A stretch of 64,000 nucleotides of DNA from Phyllobates terribilis (lineage: Eukaryota), in the NCBI RefSeq assembly GCF_046119375.1, contig NW_027362765.1:174654001-174718000 (forward strand). The letters are read 5' to 3'. The position numbers were made by a program, and so were the translations under genes. The notes under the pieces were generated by a model. The model was given only the letters and a program-made list of their open reading frames with translations. It did no database searches and was not told where the DNA came from. This document shows positions 54,176-54,733 of this stretch, in pieces; the first letter of the stretch is position 1; the number at the start of each line of letters is the position of its first letter.

Positions 54176-54312
54176 TCAGAGAATCCTTTCCATTTCAGAA
54201 GATATTCGACCTTCCCCTTAACCACCCGCCTGTCTAGAACCTTTTCGACCACATATTCCTCCTCTTCTTCATCTACTTCTTCCATTTTTTTCTTGTTTTG
54301 CTTTTTTCCCAA
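54176..54312 (-). CDS. cbx1: CBX1 coding exon 1 (chromodomain N-terminal half); start codon uncertain (TTG 54312, CTG 54324 or ATG 54285)
   Basis: [45 protein letters not shown]; exon acceptor CATACAG| with first base at 54342, donor GA|GTAAGT after 54176. Confidence 0.93.
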
Positions 54313-54733
54313 AATGGTCGCCAGGTTGCTGGTTTAATGAATCTGTATGGGATAGAGAAGAGATCAAGAGATGAAGACACTATATAAAGATATTAAATAG
54401 AGGCAAAATGCTGCATTTACTTGGTGTCACTGCTGCCTTGTCTGTTGCATCGTACTGTGAATTGCTAATTTTGCTGACCAGAGCCTGCAGATTGTGTGTG
54501 AATAATGGCCAATGGCACCGAGTTTACCAGACATGTTATCTGTCAGTTTGGGCTTGTTCATCTGTTTTTAGGTGAAAATACAAATGTATGAGATGATTAG
54601 CGGATCATCTGCTACTTTGTGCAAGTCCATGGAGTTAAAAAAAAGTTGCTAGTCCTCAATTTTAGAGCAGCATCTTAAGGGTTGAATCCAATAGTCAACA
54701 GATCAACCTTGCTCTGGATGATCATTGTCTTAA

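Follow-up and report, generated by a model that had tools for sequence, protein, structure and literature searches.

A candidate CUG start codon for HP1-beta in poison frogs and other frogs whose CBX1 gene lacks the canonical AUG

CBX1 encodes HP1-beta, a central reader of H3K9 methylation whose start codon is not usually questioned. The classical vertebrate gene with a non-AUG start is EIF4G2 (DAP5/NAT1), for which translation exclusively from GUG has been proven experimentally. For CBX1 itself, start-site ribosome profiling and N-terminal peptides from human and mouse show in-frame near-cognate starts, which yield isoforms extended by 4, 41/42, and 54 residues (Smith, Khalizeva, Haug, Cheeseman; bioRxiv 10.64898/2026.10.13.758779, October 2026). 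At H3K9me3 chromatin, the +4 form of mammalian HP1-beta, whose near-cognate start falls within the annotated 5' UTR, closely resembles the annotated protein in behaviour, with targeting intact (bioRxiv 10.64898/2026.10.13.758779). Our literature search found no paper besides this preprint that ties CBX1 to non-AUG initiation. The HP1/CBX1 family and non-AUG initiation on CBX1 are not new in themselves.

In mammals, the canonical AUG of CBX1 is kept and the +4 form belongs to a set of minor isoforms, so that the importance of the non-AUG form is hard to judge while the canonical AUG dominates. In the frogs described here, by contrast, the canonical AUG is gone. A CTG lies four codons before the canonical start, putatively the same codon as the mammalian +4 start; this correspondence is one of position and rests on the Leu found at -4 in mammalian exon-2 ORF fragments, the codon being unnamed in the preprint. 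Poison frogs, like several other lineages of frogs, are natural mutants without the canonical AUG, in which the basic N-terminal tail of the protein is still under protein-level selection. Loss of the canonical AUG in frogs is already implied by RefSeq, and no description of it was found in the literature. What appears to be new is the repeated loss of the ATG across a clade, the coding signature beginning at the -4 CUG, and the implied N-terminal truncation of many frog CBX1 models.

The CBX1 locus and its start region

The window, to which all coordinates refer, is a stretch of 64,000 nucleotides from the Phyllobates terribilis assembly GCA_046119375.1. Its sequence holds an intact and complete CBX1 (HP1-beta) gene on the minus strand, with four coding exons downstream of an untranslated exon 1. 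All exon borders are GT/AG, and the spliced frame is open until the stop, with the C-terminus reading KKDDKN.

57340..57550, minus strand: exon 1, an ATG-free 5' UTR; 5' end approximate, donor GT at 57339-57338
54176..54342, minus strand: exon 2, leader and first half of the chromodomain; acceptor cag, donor gtaagt; Pfam Chromo match and RNA contigs
52721..52895, minus strand: exon 3, end of the chromodomain and hinge; Pfam match and RNA contigs
43997..44091, minus strand: exon 4, start of the chromoshadow domain; Pfam match
42915..43872, minus strand: exon 5, remainder of the chromoshadow domain and 3' UTR; CDS 43872-43728, stop TAA at 43730-43728

Exon 1 (about 57550-57340) was found through homology to exon 1 of Ranitomeya, Hyla, and E. 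coqui and through the 5' end of frog transcript contigs. At the other end of the gene, the 3' UTR extends to about 42915, with an AATAAA at 42935-42930, and RNA-like runs contain 0.97-1.00 of the words sampled from exon 5. The chromodomain is matched by Pfam PF00385 on exons 2 and 3, and the chromoshadow domain by PF01393 on exons 4 and 5 (E = 2.7e-5, 5.2e-16). A search of solved structures gives the mouse/human CBX1 chromodomain as the top match (1ap0/1guw, E = 3.6e-15), and a search of representative proteins returned chiefly multi-chromodomain proteins. The nearest relatives of the encoded HP1 protein are CBX1 without exception, which places it as an ortholog of CBX1 and not of CBX3 or CBX5. 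In E. coqui, a PX-domain gene adjoins cbx1. The spliced product read from Met10 is identical to the 174-aa RefSeq protein XP_073539610.1 ("chromobox protein homolog 1 [Phyllobates terribilis]"), which begins MEEV and whose locus is base-for-base the same as the window. Public annotation has silently taken up a downstream ATG as the start of CBX1.

The introns of the gene are rich in repeats. In intron 3, a 3.9-kb minisatellite (46308-50165; about 100 copies of a 39-nt C-rich unit, 92% match) accounts for a block of GC 0.65 with strongly negative GC skew in the composition profile. Intron 1 contains a near-perfect 36-nt tandem repeat (56643-57118; 13.2 copies, 99%), about 220 nt downstream of exon 1 and within the CpG-rich promoter region, together with a MITE-like element (55120-55790), which is bounded by terminal inverted repeats and encloses two direct units of 116 nt. 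In intron 2, a dispersed repeat of very high copy number occupies 53370-53600 and shows many rearranged joints in contigs; its summed contig depth is about 1.6 million in a DNA run and reaches tens of thousands in RNA-like ones. Just beyond the CBX1 polyadenylation signal, the segment 41600-42800 resembles, as judged by eye, an antisense Tc1/mariner-type transposon remnant.

The start region lies at the opening of exon 2, which reads ATT CAT TAA ACC AGC AAC CTG GCG ACC ATT TTG GGA AAA AAG CAA AAC AAG AAA AAA ATG. An earlier note on this DNA had given the minus strand from the acceptor cag and ATT CAT TAA to ATG GAA, and its reading matches the window to the base.

54334..54336, minus strand: in-frame TAA, four codons before the CTG and eight before the TTG; also in RNA contigs
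54322..54324, minus strand: in-frame CTG, the candidate CUG initiation codon; context AAC CTG G, conserved
54310..54312, minus strand: TTG where the canonical CBX1 ATG would stand; independent DNA and RNA contigs agree
54286..54309, minus strand: codons of the basic HP1-beta N-terminal tail, GKKQNKKK; they precede the first AUG
54283..54285, minus strand: first AUG of the mRNA, Met10 of canonical HP1-beta; strong context AAA ATG G, start of the 174-aa RefSeq protein

The same note had claimed a TTG in place of the initiator with a TAA eight codons upstream, a CTG at 54324 in a strong context, and a putative exon 1 devoid of ATG. The TTG and TAA are indeed present at 54312-54310 and 54336-54334, the CTG stands in AAC CTG G with A at -3 and G at +4, and exon 1 plus the leader is free of ATG in any frame before 54285. 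This part of the transcript contains zero ATG in Phyllobates, Ranitomeya, and Hyla alike.

The letters of the start region are reproduced in independent data. Logan contigs of a DNA run from an independent sample (X14) show 0 differences over 54016-54551, and RNA contigs of runs X2 (54176-54346) and X13 (54225-54343) also show 0 differences to the window. Both DNA and RNA contigs carry TTG, not ATG. The RNA-like runs, X1 and X2 of two studies and X13 under a second organism label, are contig-level data and cover exons alone; their contigs join exon 2 to exon 3 (54176 to 52895) and, past 54342, continue into the 3' end of exon 1 in reverse complement. Because splicing joins exon 1 to the acceptor at 54342, the TAA, CTG, and TTG are all in the mature mRNA and its first AUG is codon 10. 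The junction from exon 1 to 54342 is the only one seen in the RNA contigs, which speaks against use of the alternative acceptor at 54330-54329 that the earlier note had raised, with the proviso that rare isoforms can escape contigs.

The in-frame TAA just inside exon 2 excludes any start farther upstream. Gastrophryne and a ranid transcript likewise have TAA at this position, four codons ahead of the CTG, so that in Phyllobates and in these two any translation of the leader must start between the TAA and the GGA. Between these codons, Phyllobates has CTG, ATT, and TTG as near-cognate codons and no others. A stabilising RNA structure or hairpin downstream of the CUG was sought and none was found (z = -0.48).

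Loss of the canonical ATG among frogs

The TTG is common to Anomaloglossus (Aromobatidae), Dendrobates, Ranitomeya, and Phyllobates, four dendrobatoid genera with separate assemblies. Judged by this distribution, the ATG-to-TTG change is older than the poison-frog radiation and dates to the ancestor of Dendrobatoidea. The radiation itself is tens of millions of years old. In alignment, the change is a simple substitution of ATG by TTG. An insertion of TTT inside the ATG (ACC AT[TTT]G GGA) was considered and rejected, as frogs and mammals all have three codons between the -4 Leu and the start.

Other neobatrachians have different codons at the canonical position.

Hyla sarda: GTA
Eleutherodactylus coqui: GTG
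Gastrophryne carolinensis: ACG
Ranid transcript: ACA
Frog of transcripts SRR5149497, SRR5149398, SRR5149529, and SRR5149535: ACG, with a new upstream AUG

In the last of these, an in-frame ATG ATG at about 275-400 of the transcripts lies 14-15 codons upstream of the conserved CTG and yields a 202-aa HP1-beta (MMADPQTNILPTKKLATATGKKQ...), which is a third answer to the missing canonical ATG. MGKKQNKKK is retained in Ascaphus, Bombina, pipids, pelobatoids, caecilians, and some neobatrachians (Dendropsophus, Staurois, Hyperolius).

RefSeq and GenBank hold CBX1 models of 171-178 aa that begin at Met10 in at least 13 neobatrachian species, including Rana temporaria, Lithobates pipiens, Aquarana catesbeiana, Nanorana parkeri, Gastrophryne carolinensis, Hyla sarda, Eleutherodactylus coqui, Anomaloglossus baeobatrachus, Dendrobates tinctorius, Ranitomeya imitator, and R. 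variabilis. Codon 10 is Met in all frogs examined, including Ascaphus, Xenopus, and species with the canonical ATG, and Val in caecilians, salamanders, and amniotes. The earlier description of V10 having become ATG is thus right as to the codon, but not as to a recent or compensatory change. Met10 as a new compensatory change is rejected, since it is an old, ancestral feature of anurans.

A gene model from an older Ranitomeya imitator assembly, CAJ0965414.1, has 404 aa and fuses a transposase-like N-terminus to the translated 5' UTR of CBX1 and HP1-beta. From comparison with the chromosome-level assembly, in which the frame of the leader differs by homopolymer length, this protein is a gene-model artefact.

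Codon-level constraint on the leader and the choice of start codon

Alignment of the leader across anurans, which the earlier note had put forward as a check, reveals coding-type substitutions from the CTG onward in nine ATG-less frog sequences. All nine fit the pattern AA[N] CTG GCN [A/G]CN nnn [TTG, GTR or ACR] GGN AAR AAR CAR AAC AAR AAR AAR ATG, and in all nine the CTG is unchanged with A at -3 and G at +4. A baseline of neutral divergence from introns was dropped, because indels and repeats spoiled most pairwise alignments (apparent divergence 0.45-0.58) and left few usable pairs (0.09-0.24). The analysis therefore relies on codon-position tests, in which parsimony changes at positions 1/2/3 were counted on a fixed tree of eight ATG-less frogs, where some substitutions may predate the loss of the ATG in their own lineage.

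The six codons (18 nt) upstream of the CTG changed 10/11/13 times at the three positions. Codons -4 to -2 (Leu-Ala-Thr/Ala) changed 2/0/5 times and GKKQNKKK 0/0/13 times, a pattern comparable with that of 28 undisputed codons of the chromodomain CDS used as a control (5/1/33). The 11 conserved leader codons together give 2/0/18, with 18 of 20 changes at third positions (P = 2e-7), a figure to be read in view of the leader being only 13 codons long and A-rich and of its most variable codons (-1 and 0) having been picked out after viewing the data. Over all 13 leader codons, the third-position excess is weaker, with 21 of 33 changes when all frogs are counted (P = 3.5e-4) and P = 0.039 when the count is confined to Dendrobatoidea. 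The patterns upstream and in the 11 leader codons differ by Fisher's test (P = 2e-4). Within Dendrobatoidea alone, where the changes follow the loss, the 11 leader codons show 0/0/7 and the six codons upstream of the CTG 3/6/4. By these substitution patterns, the leader between the CTG and the first AUG is still evolving as protein-coding sequence; changes so nearly confined to third positions argue that it is not untranslated.

The constraint bears on two possibilities raised by the earlier note, namely a full-length HP1-beta (187/183 aa) initiated at CUG or UUG with a leaky 174-aa form, and a turnover of the start codon that removed the basic tail. It favours the former, as does the place of the CTG at -4, where mammalian CBX1 is reported to have a near-cognate start, and speaks against the latter. 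If the tail had been lost, the sole product would be the 174-aa, tail-less HP1-beta from Met10, and the leader would be an untranslated 5' UTR whose similarity across species reflects residual or nucleotide-level constraint. Such an arrangement finds some support in the AUG at 54285, which is the first in the mRNA and has a strong context, in the annotation by RefSeq of a 174-aa-type form in at least 13 neobatrachian species, and in the Met10 of all frogs as a ready-made back-up start. An untranslated leader, however, would not be expected to restrict its changes to third positions in GKKQNKKK and in the dendrobatoids while the 18 nt upstream vary at all three, and the amino acids of GKKQNKKK are the same in every ATG-less frog despite 13 nucleotide changes. 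Initiation at Met10 alone is for these reasons unlikely. A translated leader could also begin at the UUG at 54312-54310 or the adjacent AUU at 54315-54313, giving about 183 aa. Both are recognised near-cognate codons for initiation (review by Kearse and Wilusz, PMC5666671). The TTG is kept in all four dendrobatoids and in Phyllobates has a context of A at -3 and G at +4, against T at -3 in Dendrobates. Codons -3 and -2 (Ala, Thr/Ala) also share in the third-position bias of codons -4 to -2, and frogs with GTA (Hyla sarda) or ACA (ranid) at the canonical position, which are not near-cognate codons, keep the same coding signature. A start at UUG or AUU is accordingly rather improbable, and CUG is preferred over it on account of these observations, of the invariance of the CTG and its context, of the ATG that occupies the -4 position in salamanders, Bombina, Leptobrachium, and Hyperolius, and of the coding K-L-A segment in fish and lungfish.

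The remaining alternative holds that the missing ATG is an artefact or belongs to a non-functional copy, through a homopolymer assembly error, a pseudogene, or an upstream ATG-containing exon spliced via the acceptor at 54330-54329. The site is flanked by runs of T, G, and A, and the older Ranitomeya imitator assembly has a homopolymer frame difference here that led to a fused gene model. Against this stand the identical letters in independent DNA and in RNA contigs of two studies and a second organism label, the TTG in four genera, the intact and expressed state of all CBX1 exons, and exon 1 to 54342 as the only junction seen; a second P. terribilis CBX1 protein is also absent among the 90% clusters listed. 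Assembly or homopolymer error is rejected by the independent DNA and RNA contigs together with the TTG in four genera, and the alternative as a whole is extremely improbable.

The probable explanation is a CUG-initiated HP1-beta of 187 aa accompanied by the 174-aa AUG form of the RefSeq model, the latter made by leaky scanning. The canonical AUG became UUG in the dendrobatoid ancestor, and the CBX1 gene is functional. The 43S complex would scan an AUG-free leader of about 230 nt and meet the CUG at 54324-54322 first, where the optimal context (A at -3, G at +4) would let a fraction of ribosomes initiate. CUG is generally the most efficient non-AUG codon, and is usually less efficient than AUG as an initiator. 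If Met is inserted at the CUG, as expected, the product would begin Met-Ala-Thr-Ile-Leu-GKKQNKKK-Met and would thus keep the basic tail and carry four extra residues. The remaining ribosomes would scan on to the strong AUG at 54285 (AAA AUG G) and produce the 174-aa protein, which has no tail. The data establish the structure of the gene and its mRNA, the reality and age of the ATG loss, and the codon-level constraint, whereas the choice of CUG as start and the existence of two products are inferred.

For neobatrachians at large, the balance tilts slightly toward a broader scheme, in which the canonical AUG was replaced several times, by TTG in poison frogs, GTG/GTA in Eleutherodactylus and Hyla, and ACG/ACA in microhylids and ranids, and the basic tail was kept by obligate initiation at the -4 CUG, in the manner of EIF4G2 and across clades. 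If so, the -4 codon, whether AUG or CUG, would be the ancestral and functionally sufficient start of tetrapods. The frog data supply independent evolutionary evidence for the use and sufficiency of the -4 near-cognate start. The frog-specific in-frame AUG at Met10 and a near-cognate start may together make loss of the canonical AUG tolerable. The RefSeq CBX1 models of at least 13 frog species (171-178 aa, Met10 start) probably lack the true N-terminus, and they would be short by 13 N-terminal residues if the CUG start is real. With two predicted products 13 residues apart, frogs offer a simple test system.

Comparison with other vertebrate CBX1 genes and with EIF4G2

The position of the putative start is used differently among vertebrates. 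In salamanders (Pleurodeles, Ambystoma, Cynops), CBX1 begins MATTVGKKQ, with ATG as the -4 codon and annotated start and with the canonical Met replaced by Val. Bombina, Leptobrachium, and Hyperolius (MA[AT]SMGKKQ) have ATG at both the -4 and the canonical positions. Where these amphibians have a true ATG at -4, Phyllobates has CTG. In fish and lungfish (Arapaima, Polyodon, Protopterus), the segment K-L-A-x-x-GKKQ is ordinary coding sequence within long AUG-initiated N-terminal extensions, and Ala, Gly, or Leu frequently stands where the canonical Met would be. Fish CBX1 starts at an upstream AUG, whereas Phyllobates lacks one and has a stop codon in frame. One cbx1 copy of Arapaima gigas has GCT at the canonical Met and AAG CTG GCG upstream (about 3400-3440), and a "hypothetical protein" has been called there from an intronic ATG.

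In the frog gene, the UAA removes the longer extensions known from mammals, and with the canonical AUG also gone, a protein that carries the basic tail could plausibly arise only from the CUG. Initiation at the next AUG would give a truncated form that is absent in mammals, which have Val at codon 10.

A parallel in gene organization is EIF4G2. Both it and frog CBX1 are conserved housekeeping genes whose coding start lacks an AUG and has a conserved near-cognate codon in good context. The non-AUG start of EIF4G2 is vertebrate-wide, whereas the state of frog CBX1 is clade-specific within amphibians and putative. Frog CBX1 also differs from EIF4G2 in having a strong in-frame AUG 13 codons after the non-AUG start.
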